64,000 nt of DNA, taken from positions 310,001-374,000 of the forward strand of contig OX337240.1 of the NCBI GenBank assembly GCA_946965045.2, in the 5' to 3' direction. A program made the translations under genes and the position numbers. The notes below the pieces were generated by a model. It made no database searches and was not told where the DNA came from. It saw only the letters and a list, made by a program, of their open reading frames with translations. Shown here piece by piece: positions 49,068 to 54,376 of the stretch; position 1 is the stretch's first letter, and each line of letters begins with the position of its first letter. This DNA comes from Epithemia pelagica. Its lineage: Eukaryota; Protista; Bacillariophyta.

Positions 49068-50888
49068 ATGACGATGACTGTGATGCACTTGAAACGTCTG
49101 CTGCCGAAACTTACTCCTAGCAACATCCAGATGAAGACGACGACTGCTGTCGAAGGTCTCCTCCGGATTCGGACCAAGGCAACCACGACCACTGCTGCCG
49201 CAACGACAACGACATCCTCGTCTTGTCCTTTCTCGGGTGCCAATTCCACAACGACAACCCCCAGTCAAGGTCGTGCCGCTTCCACCGCTGCAAACCTTCC
49301 AGAGACGTCCCATCATGACATCAACGAGACGGTCCCCCAATTGGTTCAGGTTCCGAAATTGCCCATTCTGGGGAGTACGATTCCTCAGTATTCCAATACT
49401 CCGGACTTTATGCAGCTTGACTTTTGGCCCAAGATGCGCAAACAATTTGGAGACTTTTATTCCTTTGGTTTGCCTGGGATGGGTGTCGACATCTACGGCA
49501 CATGCTACGTCATCCAAGATCCCCACGTCATGGCTCAGTTGATTCGACATGAGGGCCAATTTCCCAGTGGCAGCACGGAAACTAGTTTTTGTCTTCACAA
49601 GTATTATCACGATCGCAACCGTCTGGCTCAACACTTTTTTACAGAAGCGGGTCCGGAATGGAAACGGTTGCGACAATTTGTCCAGACCGACATGATGTCA
49701 CCGGTCAGCAGTGAACGATATTTGCCGGCTATTTGTCAAGCCGCGCGTATGGACGCTCAAGGGGCACCATCCTATCGTGAAGACATGAACAAATTCTTGG
49801 TCCATGTCTCCTGTGATATGGTCTTCAACGTCTTGATTGGATCCTCGACCAGCATTGTCGATCCCACGGTGGACACCAAACCCGAAGCTAGGGCCTTCTG
49901 TCATCACATTTCCACGGCCTTCAAGAAAAACAGTGAGTTGCAGCTGAGCTTGTGGGATGCTCTTCTCATCAAGAAGTTCAATATAAGTACCAAGAAATAC
50001 AAGGTCTTTGAAGAAAACTTTCATGCTGCCGACATCTACGCTCAGGACAAAGTTCGCGACTTGATAAAGAAACCAAAAAATGAACAGACGGAATTCGAGC
50101 GCAATAGTTATGCCATGGCCGCCTTTGAACGAATGCAAAACGAAACTAACCAGGACTCTCAACTGACCACGAAGCAAATCCAGTGCATTGTACCATTTTT
50201 CATGGCGGCTGGCGTCGATACGACGGCCAACAATGCGTCGTGGAAGATCTTGCATATGGCCTTGTCGCCCGAGGCACAAGAACGTGTCTATCAAGAACAG
50301 TTACAATTCCATGGTGGACCACCAGAGACCTTGCAAGTAACACCCAACTCGGTCTTGCCGCGCAATGCACCTTTTCTGCATGCCTGTATTCGCGAAAGTC
50401 ATCGATTGGCCAATCCAGCCGCTCTCCTTCCGAATAGACGCTTCGCCAAACCGGTGAACATTTTTGGCGTTGAATTGCCACCACGCACTACTGTGATTTT
50501 GGATGGCTACTCGACTGGTATCGACCCTCGTTATTGGGACGATGAAGAAGATGCCATGGCCTTTAAGCCCCAACGCTTTTTGAAAGACGCTGTCCAAGCC
50601 CGCAAGGATACACCCGCCGCAGTGGTCGATCATACCTTTTTCTCAGGGCCCTTTTCACAAGGTGCTCGACGATGTCCAGGCAGTCGTGTCGCCAACTTGG
50701 AATTGGCTACCTTGTTGGCCAATCTCGTCGTTCAATGGGAGTTCTCCGTCGCACCCGATCCTGAAACAGGGAAGATGCCCTATACGCACTGGTCGCAAGT
50801 TCCGTATGGATTGGAAACCATCAACACCTCGTATTTACCAGCGATGGACTTTGTGCCCCGACGACACGGGAATTCCACCTTCGTGTAA
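49068..50888 (+). CDS. Cytochrome P450 (mitochondrial-clan-like), paralog 5
   Basis: FMAAGVDTT, ESHR, FKPQRF, FSQGARRCPG. Confidence 0.95.
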   Translation: MTMTVMHLKRLLPKLTPSNIQMKTTTAVEGLLRIRTKATTTTAAATTTTSSSCPFSGANSTTTTPSQGRAASTAANLPETSHHDINETVPQLVQVPKLPILGSTIPQYSNTPDFMQLDFWPKMRKQFGDFYSFGLPGMGVDIYGTCYVIQDPHVMAQLIRHEGQFPSGSTETSFCLHKYYHDRNRLAQHFFTEAGPEWKRLRQFVQTDMMSPVSSERYLPAICQAARMDAQGAPSYREDMNKFLVHVSCDMVFNVLIGSSTSIVDPTVDTKPEARAFCHHISTAFKKNSELQLSLWDALLIKKFNISTKKYKVFEENFHAADIYAQDKVRDLIKKPKNEQTEFERNSYAMAAFERMQNETNQDSQLTTKQIQCIVPFFMAAGVDTTANNASWKILHMALSPEAQERVYQEQLQFHGGPPETLQVTPNSVLPRNAPFLHACIRESHRLANPAALLPNRRFAKPVNIFGVELPPRTTVILDGYSTGIDPRYWDDEEDAMAFKPQRFLKDAVQARKDTPAAVVDHTFFSGPFSQGARRCPGSRVANLELATLLANLVVQWEFSVAPDPETGKMPYTHWSQVPYGLETINTSYLPAMDFVPRRHGNSTFV

Positions 50889-51365: not shown

Positions 51366-51962
51366 TTGTCCTCGCCTCTGCTGCTCAGCTGTAACGATGA
51401 ATTCTACCATTACATCGCGTGTATTCTTTTCGGTGTGCGGTTCTTGTTCCCTGCGATCCTCTCTTTACTGGTGTCTCTCTTCAACGCCGCCTCTTCCAGT
51501 AAGGGCGCAAGTCGAAAGAGCCACCACCAGCAACGCCGTCCCGCTTGCTTTCTGTGTCAATGCAATTTCCATGACTGGGAAGACACGTCCTGTCGAACCA
51601 CCGGCAGCGACTACAGCCAGTATCTGAAATACCTCGCATGGGGTGCCGGATTGGCCCTTTTCGGGATTGGAGCCTCGGTCTTTGTTCCCTGTGCTGCAGC
51701 GTCCTTGGCTGGGTTTGGAGCCAGCGGCATTGTCGGTGGATCTGCTGCCGCCGCATCTCAAGCGGCCGTGGGAAATATTGCGGCCGGTTCGTTGTTTGCC
51801 TCCTTGCAGAGTTTGGGAGCAACCGGGACCTATATCTCGGGTATGATGTACGGAGGCGCCACTGCCATGGCTGGAGGAGGCACCATGGCCGCTTCCATGA
51901 TATCGAAGGAACAGTGCATGTATTGCATTGTTTGTGGTCGCCCGCTGAATACACCCGAATAA
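51366..51962 (+). CDS. ISG12/IFI6-IFI27 (Ifi-6-16)-like small membrane protein 1; 5' end unresolved
   Basis: LAGFGASGIVGGSAAAASQAAVGNIAAGSLFASLQSLGATG fits the ISG12 motif; C-terminal CIVCGRP. No in-frame ATG precedes the domain. One possible model is ATG 51397 with intron 51499..51620. Confidence 0.75.
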   Translation: MSSPLLLSCNDEFYHYIACILFGVRFLFPAILSLLVSLFNAASSSKGASRKSHHQQRRPACFLCQCNFHDWEDTSCRTTGSDYSQYLKYLAWGAGLALFGIGASVFVPCAAASLAGFGASGIVGGSAAAASQAAVGNIAAGSLFASLQSLGATGTYISGMMYGGATAMAGGGTMAASMISKEQCMYCIVCGRPLNTPE

Positions 51963-52356
51963 TGGGTGCATCGCACAAGCTTCTGAATAAAATGAATCGT
52001 TTGCCTTGTCGTCGTTTGTACTGAACGATACTAAATACTGTAGTTCACGCCCCATTCCGAGTTGCATAAGAACTTTCTGTGTCGTACGTCCATCCGCAAT
52101 CAAAGTGATTCCACCTCGTGCGTGCGATAGAGGTATACGCACACTATACGCACGCAGAGAATACTCTTGTAGAATGGTGACGACACTCAGGAGGAAGAGC
52201 TTTCCAATCCAAATCAATACTATGCACGCAGAGGACAACGAAAAATGGAAATCGTACCAAAGGATCGAGACAGCCCACTCTTGTACCACTCCAAGTCGCT
52301 CATGGTGCACGATCCACAGTCTGCATCTGTGTCCAAAATCGCTTCACTTGGCACAC

Positions 52357-53124
52357 ATGGCGACGCCACCACCACCGCCCTATCCCAGGACTGTCGGGAT
52401 CTGTCATGTCTGTGACCGACCGGTGAATGTGCACGAGCAGGGCGACGATGAAGAATTTCCGCATGAGCCTACAGTCACACTCAAAGTAGCGCCAGAACGA
52501 CTTGCCAGCCGAGATCGACAAGCCCCGCTGAATGTACAACCACAGGGTTCTGATCCTTTTCATAGGAGGGACCAATACCAACCATTCGAAAGCGTTTTGT
52601 CCGAACCACATGACAGACAACGAATTTCCAGTGTATGGGAGGTCCTTGCACTCGTGTGGTGGGCTCTAGTCATGGTGGTCGGACTCCTTGTGTCGGCTAC
52701 ATGTGCCGCAGGCACTCTCTTGGGATTTGAAACCAAGGGCATTGCCTCCGGATCGTGGGCGGCCATGATGCAAGGCCCTCATGTACGCTGCGGTTCCTGG
52801 TTTGCCGTTATGCAAAGTTGGGGAGCAAAAGGCTTGTTTGTCACGGGTATGACGTATGGGAGTGGCCTCACGGTAATTGGTTTGTCCATGGTACTCTCGG
52901 TCCTGTGCGTCCAACAGCACCGCTGCAGCTGCGCCAAACAGATGTCATCCCCCCAACCCAGGCGAAAGTATCGTCTATCTACGGCGGCAATGGTTGACAC
53001 TCCGTCGTTGTTCCGCGAAGAGCCTTTGCCGCAAGGATCAATACATGAAGTAGCATTCATGTCGTGGCATTGTCCTGCCTGTGAACAACCTTGGGAGAAT
53101 GTGTCATCGTTGGGATCGTCGTAA
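52357..53124 (+). CDS. ISG12-like protein 2 (255 aa) with N- and C-terminal CxxC
   Basis: MATPPPPPYP, CHVCDRP, TM, LLGFETKGIASGSWAAMMQGPHVRCGSWFAVMQSWGAKG, TM, HCPACEQPW. Confidence 0.75.
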   Translation: MATPPPPPYPRTVGICHVCDRPVNVHEQGDDEEFPHEPTVTLKVAPERLASRDRQAPLNVQPQGSDPFHRRDQYQPFESVLSEPHDRQRISSVWEVLALVWWALVMVVGLLVSATCAAGTLLGFETKGIASGSWAAMMQGPHVRCGSWFAVMQSWGAKGLFVTGMTYGSGLTVIGLSMVLSVLCVQQHRCSCAKQMSSPQPRRKYRLSTAAMVDTPSLFREEPLPQGSIHEVAFMSWHCPACEQPWENVSSLGSS

Positions 53125-53539
53125 CAGACGGACAAGGTCTCATTGGCAATTGTAACAAGAACTAAGCTTTTATCGCAACGTAACAAAGACGTAGCTCACT
53201 TGTGAAGTAACAAGACGATCTGTAACATCTTTTGCCGTTTTCCTTATAGAAGAGATTGATGTTTTTGTCTCCTTCCCGTCGCTTGTACTGACCGATACTA
53301 AATACTGTAGTTCACATCCCCAGTCCGACTTTCCTGTGCCGTACGTCCATCCGCAATCCAAGTGCGTGAGTGCGTGAGGTATACGCACGCCGAGGATGCT
53401 CTTGGAGAATAATGGTGACGACAGGAGCTTTCCAATCCACATGCACGCAGAGGACAACAATGTACCAAAGGATCGAGACAACACACACTTGCACTCCAGT
53501 TCGCTCATGGTGCTCGATTCACTTTTCAAATCCTCACCA

Positions 53540-54376
53540 ATGCCAAGAGCGCCACCACCACCAACAACAACAACCACATATCCCAGCATGGTTGACATTT
53601 GTCATGTATGTGACCGACCGGTGACTCCTTTCCTTTCGCAAAATGACGACCAAGAAGCACCGCATCCGCATACATACCTACCGGAAGGACGAGAAGAAGT
53701 TGCCGCCGCCGACCGAGATCCACCCGACTTGCTGGATGTCGACCTTCTCGGTCTTTCTCAACCAGTTCCTCCTATTCATGGGAACCAACCACAACTGCGA
53801 GAACCACTTCCAGTCATCCAGGAACACGATGCGAACGGTCCCTCTCGATTCGAGGGTAGTTCGTCCGAGCCCAATACCCAGCAACAAACTCGCACTGTCT
53901 GTTGCGAACGTTTCGCACTCGTTCGGTGGCTGTTAGTGATGGCGGTCGGATTTCTCATGGCGACTGTCAGTGCTGCTGCCACTCTCATTGGATTCGACAG
54001 CCAGGGCATTGCCGCTGGATCCTGGGCAGCCACCATGGAAAATGCTCATGAACGCTCCGGATCCTGGTTTGCCCGTTTGGAATCTTGGGGAGCCCGAGGC
54101 TGGTTTGTTACGGGCATGACGTATGGTATTGTCGTTACCGTAATTGGATTCCTCCTGTATGCGGCTCAACAGCAGCAACCTTGCTGCAGTGACACTCCAC
54201 CAACAGCAGTCAATCTCCACCGACAACAACCACAACATCAACCACAGCAGGTACCAGCATGTACCTATGATCCCCGGGAAAACTACCATCCGCACGAACT
54301 GCCGTCTCATTCCTCGTCGCAATGTCCGGCGTGTCGTCAACCCTGGGAGAGCGTGTCATCAATGGGGTGGTCATAA
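53540..54376 (+). CDS. ISG12-like protein 3 (278 aa) with N- and C-terminal CxxC
   Basis: Tandem paralog of 52357..53124: CHVCDRP, LIGFDSQGIAAGSWAATMENAHERSGSWFARLESWGARG, QCPACRQPW. Confidence 0.75.
   Translation: MPRAPPPPTTTTTYPSMVDICHVCDRPVTPFLSQNDDQEAPHPHTYLPEGREEVAAADRDPPDLLDVDLLGLSQPVPPIHGNQPQLREPLPVIQEHDANGPSRFEGSSSEPNTQQQTRTVCCERFALVRWLLVMAVGFLMATVSAAATLIGFDSQGIAAGSWAATMENAHERSGSWFARLESWGARGWFVTGMTYGIVVTVIGFLLYAAQQQQPCCSDTPPTAVNLHRQQPQHQPQQVPACTYDPRENYHPHELPSHSSSQCPACRQPWESVSSMGWS

Follow-up and report, generated by a model that had tools for sequence, protein, structure and literature searches.

The Ifi-6-16 (FAM14) family, whose human members are IFI6, IFI27/ISG12, IFI27L1 and IFI27L2, includes in ISG12, IFI6 and IFI27 prominent interferon effectors whose biochemical mechanism is still unclear. 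Described animal FAM14 proteins are about 100–130 amino acids (aa) long, and are not known to carry Cys pairs at their termini. A pattern of two transmembrane (TM) segments and two hydrophilic regions has been described for these proteins, and IFI6 of animals carries a signal peptide (PMC13705193). LITAF, a monotopic membrane protein that binds zinc, has two Cys-rich halves around a 22-residue hydrophobic stretch and an N-terminal Pro-rich region (PMC5095921, PMC5142333). Here, we analyzed a 64,000-nucleotide stretch of the diatom Epithemia pelagica (the window, G000:C16:310001–374000, in a genome of 60.5 Mb and 23 contigs). Within it, positions 51366–54376 hold three tandem plus-strand open reading frames (ORFs), G1, G2 and G3, which by profile and relatives belong to Ifi-6-16 and which carry a Cys pair on either side of the family's membrane core. 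According to the sequence and the ORF listing, the three are arranged as follows, with helices and linkers as predicted:

51366–51962, plus strand: G1, 198 open codons, an Ifi-6-16 paralogue of canonical type; in order, a hydrophobic N-terminal segment, CFLC(QC), the core and CMYCIVCGRP.
52357–53124, plus strand: G2, 255 aa, start MATPPPPPYP; in order, MATPPPPPY (a PPxY motif), CHVC at residues 16–19, a disordered linker, a TM helix at 87–121, short helices at 126–157, a TM helix at 160–190, a linker and an HCPAC knuckle (CPAC at 239–242).
53588–54376, plus strand: G3, 262 aa, identical to protein P0002; in order, an MVDICHVC knuckle (CHVC at 5–8), a long Pro/Gln-rich linker, a divergent Ifi-6-16 core, a Gln-rich linker and a QCPAC knuckle (CPAC at 246–249 in the 262-aa model).

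We examined family membership by scanning the whole proteins against Pfam Ifi-6-16 (PF06140; curated cut-off 29.1 bits). All three genes matched with E-values of 1e-5 to 1e-6, at or just below the cut-off, in agreement with a reading of the sequence alone (hereafter the sequence-only reading) that had proposed three adjacent ISG12-type genes: G1 gave 27.7 bits (E 2.5e-6), G2 29.1 bits, equal to the cut-off (E 9.6e-7), and G3 25.3 bits (E 1.4e-5). A six-frame scan of the genome gave 31.1, 33 and 27.4 bits, respectively, and an NCBIfam scan of the trio returned no match. The relatives of the trio scored 31–40 bits, above the cut-off, and a subfamily profile of 20 members (A5) matched human IFI27L1 (PDB 2LOQ) with an E-value of 3.5e-8 over the core; G2 alone gave 0.53 against the same protein. 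Hydropathy and the AlphaFold2 helices agree on a small membrane protein with two hydrophobic helices around a Gly/Ala-rich segment. Membership in the ISG12/IFI27 family is sound because of the scores of the relatives and the match of the A5 profile to IFI27L1. By these profile comparisons the trio is borderline for Ifi-6-16 when its members are taken individually and clear through its relatives, and its genes are tandem paralogues of a subfamily of small integral membrane proteins within Ifi-6-16 (ISG12/IFI27/IFI6, FAM14).

The Cys pairs around the core were borne out as the sequence-only reading had them, with CHVC and CPAC in both G2 and G3 and the extended form HCPAC in G2. The end of G1 was likewise as described (CMYCIVCGRPLNTPE). 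The CIVCGRP of G1 is present, but the proposed likeness to the N-terminal knuckle of the other two genes is better read differently: CMYCIVC follows the core, and the motif aligns as the CxxCG knuckle that the family carries at its C-terminus. That reading had also missed an N-terminal CFLC(QC) ahead of the core of G1, and because G1 carries this CFLC, all three genes are paired on both sides. Between G2 and G3, ICHVCDRPV is identical, as are 13 of the 18 residues at the C-terminal end, a stretch that spans the second knuckle.

We then asked how far the layout extends beyond this genome. When 1.84 billion representatives were searched with a profile, 3,521 matched. CxxC was found on both sides of the core in 29 of the first 155 relatives retrieved and, after a further word search, in 40 of 235. 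Named carriers include the diatoms Epithemia clementina, Synedropsis sp. CCMP1620 and Cylindrotheca closterium, a metagenome-assembled genome of Bacillariaceae and the choanoflagellate Choanoeca perplexa. The N-terminal pair typically lies at residues 3–16 (median 9) and the C-terminal pair close to the end (median distance 13 residues), where the knuckle takes the forms CPxCG and CxxCG..F; the joints between knuckles and core are disordered and often acidic linkers. All four Cys were invariant when 20 compact members were aligned (mean column identity 33%). The conservation of the Cys pairs, on which the sequence-only reading depended, was thus upheld. Among complete-looking proteins, 39 had both pairs, 14 only the N-terminal pair, 8 only the C-terminal pair and 121 neither (odds ratio 42, p 4e-20, a statistic that ignores relatedness). 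Judged by the core alone, knuckled proteins lie closest to other knuckled proteins, and for this reason we regard them as a subfamily. Across diatoms and in at least one choanoflagellate, the predicted proteins show a core bracketed by CxxC about 3–16 residues from the N-terminus and about 10–20 residues from the C-terminus, and this layout, met in many other protists too, is more than local chance. The literature search found no paper on zinc-flanked Ifi-6-16 proteins or on diatom ISG12 genes, with most subscription journals outside its range, and to that extent the claim that the layout is undescribed stands.

To view the arrangement in three dimensions, we modelled G2 and a Cylindrotheca member (P0044) with AlphaFold2 using an alignment of 83 sequences. 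In both models, two long helices, the first of them hydrophobic, enclose a pair of short Gly/Ala helices (the four lie at residues 28–48, 54–68, 72–86 and 89–114 in P0044). In P0044, the termini are modelled as beta-hairpins at residues 5–16 and 151–166 (strands 5–7/14–16 and 151–155/162–166) with a predicted local distance difference test score (pLDDT) of 83–92, and the linkers score below 50; the knuckle blocks of G2 score about 85 at the N-terminus and about 76 at the C-terminus. Each CxxC of the P0044 model, whose Cys are invariant in A5, would therefore sit in its own predicted beta-hairpin, as in a zinc ribbon. No signal peptide was found ahead of the N-terminal knuckle, and Ifi-6-16 cores occur naturally in C-terminal fusions with a RING finger (P0224) or with annexin repeats (P0174 and many others). 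Because of these two observations and the two-TM pattern of FAM14 (PMC13705193), we infer that both ends of the protein face the cytosol.

We consider it fairly probable that the two knuckles form a single cytosolic Zn(Cys)4 module, similar to a zinc ribbon, which clasps the membrane hairpin. The four Cys of the two knuckles, which are of the CPxCG zinc-ribbon/rubredoxin type, would jointly coordinate a single metal ion, most likely Zn, and the protein would thereby form a closed loop over the hairpin. The principle would be the same as that of LITAF, with an independent origin.

Several observations weigh against this interpretation. The mean pLDDT of the models was 63 for G2 and 65 for P0044, with a predicted template modelling score of 0.30–0.32, and the Foldseek search of the PDB and the wide VIA-align search with the two models yielded generic helical hairpins or isolated knuckles at best and nothing for the termini. 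A look-up of G2 in the ESM Atlas likewise returned no usable match. Given the signal peptide of animal IFI6, different branches of the family may have different topologies. A tree-aware count of co-occurrence left one independent pair on supported branches, since the 74-residue core is too short to resolve the tree. Relatives with a single pair exist, and many, not demonstrably all, are fragments or frameshifted models. PPPY is confined to G2 and its orthologue, lies inside a Pro run and depends on which start codon is used. In the present assembly, the G1 frame lacks an ATG. Furthermore, as judged from protein alignments with a close relative, the frame of the G2 orthologue P0001 shifts after STAA, with loss of CPAC, and the G1 orthologue P0003 has lost CIVC by a frameshift; P0003 also carries C-to-Y, A-to-P and G-to-R changes at core positions conserved in the family. 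Both orthologues thus lack the C-terminal knuckle, and with these lesions in the relative, constraint on the trio may be relaxed.

These points bear on two alternatives of similar, low probability. In the first, the pairs meet between protomers, as in the zinc hook of Rad50, so that the metal sites would drive the protein to form dimers or larger assemblies. Zn needs more than two Cys and hence a partner, which oligomerisation could supply; the 14 proteins with only the N-terminal pair and the 8 with only the C-terminal one would find a place under this scheme, the N-terminus of the choanoflagellate protein gives a weak half-match to Rad50_zn_hook (E 3e-4, below the cut-off), and the long flexible linkers permit either geometry. 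However, the strong co-occurrence of the pairs and the invariance of the four Cys in the subfamily speak for a site within one chain, many proteins with a single pair are fragmentary or come from frameshifted gene models, and CPxCG knuckles normally pair within a single zinc ribbon. We therefore regard an intermolecular hook as unlikely.

The second alternative is that the trio is what remains, in decay, of a birth-and-death family: functional ancestors would have passed on the motifs, for which these three copies would no longer be selected. The out-of-frame start codon of G1, described below, and the lesions of P0003 and P0001 would be expected of such copies, and the cores of G2 and G3 have diverged strongly from those of the family (44–48% identity). 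The P0001 and P0003 losses suggest either copy decay in that lineage or assembly errors; both orthologues are about 95–97% identical to their counterparts where still in frame, and the one-base indels in the window or in the relative may be assembly errors. Against decay, G2 and G3 keep long open frames, and another public record (P0247) contains the same G2 sequence. A close relative differs from G2 by 7 changes in 211 residues, none of them in residues 120–211, which belong to the core. The ratio of nonsynonymous to synonymous change (dN/dS) between G2 and G3 was 0.38 overall; by region, with few codons in the knuckles, it was 0.16 in the C-terminal knuckle, 0.35 in the N-terminal knuckle, 0.40 in the core and 0.46 in the first linker, and was saturated in the second. 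Outside the core, the knuckles are the best conserved parts of the two genes. On this evidence, we consider the loss of selection on these copies to be improbable.

Least probable of all, and in our view very doubtful, is that the CxxC motifs are redox-active dithiols, heavy-metal (Cu/Cd) sites or lipidation sites rather than structural zinc ligands: CPYC and CPHC, which occur among the motifs, are also active-site motifs of glutaredoxins and DsbA, and one relative has a weak, sub-threshold match to a heavy-metal-binding domain, but no thioredoxin or HMA fold surrounds the motifs, AlphaFold2 predicts short beta-hairpins, the CPxCG...F flanks and numerous zinc-ribbon half-matches fit zinc knuckles, and pairs that lie tens of residues from the membrane have a poor geometry for palmitoylation.

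Returning to the single-chain zinc clasp, the proteins would most likely be residents of an organelle or endomembrane that oligomerise, and their assembly or turnover would be controlled from the putative cytosolic metal module. A subfamily with four invariant Cys and a probable cytosolic metal site would offer a conserved and mutable handle on the same core that the interferon effectors use, and with it a direct experimental route to the topology, oligomerisation and regulation of the ISG12 fold. It also shows that Ifi-6-16 proteins were diversifying in unicellular eukaryotes without interferon. The tandem expansion, rapid divergence and copy decay in diatoms form a pattern that may be expected of stress or defence genes. 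A bolder proposal, to which we give little weight, is that the split zinc ribbon is old, perhaps ancestral in ISG12/IFI27, was kept in diatoms and choanoflagellates and was lost toward the animal interferon-induced genes, so that a metal- or redox-sensitive cytosolic clasp would gate the oligomerisation of the Gly-rich helices. If this were true, the clasp could act as a switch of membrane permeabilisation, of cell death or of the antiviral remodelling of membranes, and the fast-evolving, tandemly duplicating G2 and G3 would be the arms-race end of the system.

Three features upstream of the coding regions concern the starts of the genes:

51397–51399, plus strand: ATG one base out of the G1 frame, at which the reading of the orthologue starts (MNSTIYIAC..., P0003).
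52000–52356, plus strand: 5' flank of G2, holding an alternative ATG at 52222 (MHAEDN).
53271–53587, plus strand: 5' flank of G3, a duplicate of the G2 flank, with in-frame upstream ATGs of a long ORF from 53396.

Around the first of these, the window reads ACCATTACATC, and the protein of the relative implies ACCATTTACATC, the DNA change being deduced from the protein. G1 appears damaged at its 5' end, and the offset, a putative one-base shift at 51410–51415, would come either from a frameshift near the 5' end or from an error in the assembly. Rescue of the start by an 81-nt GT..AG intron was rejected by hand, as an intron of that length leaves the frame unchanged. For G2, the ATG at 52222 (MHAEDN...) is in frame, 45 codons upstream of the start given above, and is used by the public model P0247, which is otherwise identical to G2. 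The open frame of G3 likewise reaches upstream to 53396.

G2 and G3 are a fast-diverging, species-restricted pair, about 40% identical overall and 61% in the core, and in their middle helices Gly/Ala is replaced by charged residues and Trp. Their 5' flanks (52004–52317 against 53271–53522) are 80–91% identical in blocks, compared with 75% for the coding cores and far less for the linkers. Both flanks keep the upstream ATG (MHAEDN), after which the frames differ between the copies and both remain open; the G3 flank also carries a degenerate Pro-rich stretch, PPPPTTTTTYP. Because the reading frames differ between the two copies, the flank is probably non-coding, and it could be a conserved promoter or 5' untranslated region, an upstream ORF or the product of recent gene conversion. 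An origin of the flank from a repeat or transposon was rejected, as it is present only at G2 and G3 genome-wide.

The local expansion suggested by the sequence-only reading is real. There are nine Ifi-6-16 copies in the genome, all on C16, in two clusters, namely the trio and, upstream of it, six further copies at C16:129.6–149.9 kb. The core of G1 is 70–72% identical to copies of that second cluster, whose members are as follows:

C16:129639–130181, minus strand: copy with the N-terminal CSLC only.
C16:130819–131417, minus strand: copy whose core is divided between two frames by either an intron or a frameshift, one frame carrying CPIC and the other CPHC.
C16, 132 kb: copy with both pairs, CPIC...CPHC.
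C16, 137 kb: copy with both pairs, CFFC...CPYC.
C16, 138 kb: copy without pairs; a remnant, NVVCGKHP, aligns to the N-terminal knuckle.
C16:149474–149926, plus strand: partial copy.

CxxC thus brackets the core in at least five of the nine copies, across two clusters on one chromosome, and the copy divided between two frames is a sixth that has both pairs. Directly upstream of the trio, the window holds a 606-aa ORF (49068–50888, plus strand) that looks like a cytochrome P450, with an FxxGxRxCxG-type heme motif near its C-terminus. Among the relatives, P0224 is a 170-aa protein with an Ifi-6-16 core and a C-terminal RING finger, and P0174, P0178, P0184 and P0197 represent an abundant class of about 270 aa, in which an N-terminal Ifi-6-16 core is followed by annexin repeats (PF00191).

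Comparison with known systems begins with LITAF, since the zinc finger of the trio had been called LITAF-like. As a statement of homology this failed: a LITAF relationship was rejected by the Pfam scan, by a positive control from the same genome and by hhalign. G1, G2 and G3 gave no match to PF10601 (zf-LITAF-like, the LITAF/SIMPLE-like domain of LITAF and CDIP1) at E<=10, the genome's own LITAF gene gave 61.8 bits with the same profile, and hhalign against LITAF aligned 13 knuckle columns with a probability of 38%. One relative, P0112, has a C-terminal half-match to PF10601 of 21.1 bits, against a cut-off of 23.8. The control gene is the canonical one:

C11:1953297–1953491, minus strand: canonical LITAF gene, with PPAY, CPYC, a hydrophobic stretch and HYCPRC.

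The likeness, as we read it, is one of analogy only. In both cases two zinc-knuckle halves (putative in the trio) lie around a membrane segment, with ends that are cytosolic in LITAF (PMC5095921, PMC5142333) and probably so in the trio, and as LITAF has an N-terminal PPxY region, G2 has PPPY before its first knuckle. The spacers differ: that of LITAF consists of one hydrophobic stretch of about 22 residues, and that of the trio of a four-helix Ifi-6-16 core with linkers, more than 200 residues in all. The distance between the pairs is about 220 residues in G2 and about 240 in G3, as opposed to the compact LITAF layout of about 70 residues. The second half of LITAF reads HxCxxC, whereas G2 has HCPAC, with a different spacing. 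The PPPY start of G2 is as the sequence-only reading gave it if translation begins at 52357; G3 has only a degenerate form of PPxY, and the wider subfamily lacks it. The genome is rich in WW domains (67 matches), and the PPPY of G2 could recruit WW-domain proteins. A single open frame of 2448 aa at C2:3303932–3309562 (minus strand) holds at least 17 tandem WW matches, an unusually long array.

With zinc ribbons and rubredoxin, the trio shares knuckles of the CPxCG type, which form beta-hairpins in the models and give numerous sub-threshold half-matches to zinc-ribbon profiles. Unlike in those families, none of which was matched across both halves, the halves are separated by a whole membrane domain, and because of this separation no existing profile describes the module. 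If zinc binding is true, it would be a second, independent membrane-split zinc ribbon beside that of LITAF.

The closest described relatives are the FAM14 proteins. The human members and the trio share a homologous membrane core, with the same order of a hydrophobic helix, GFG-x-GI-x-GS, AAGS-x-FA-x-LQS-x-GA-x-G and a second hydrophobic helix. In contrast to animal FAM14, the diatom core is bracketed by long linkers with a terminal CxxC knuckle at each end, G2 and G3 have charged residues and Trp in place of Gly/Ala in the middle helices, and Epithemia pelagica has no interferon system. The trio and its relatives are a variant layout of the known Ifi-6-16 family.

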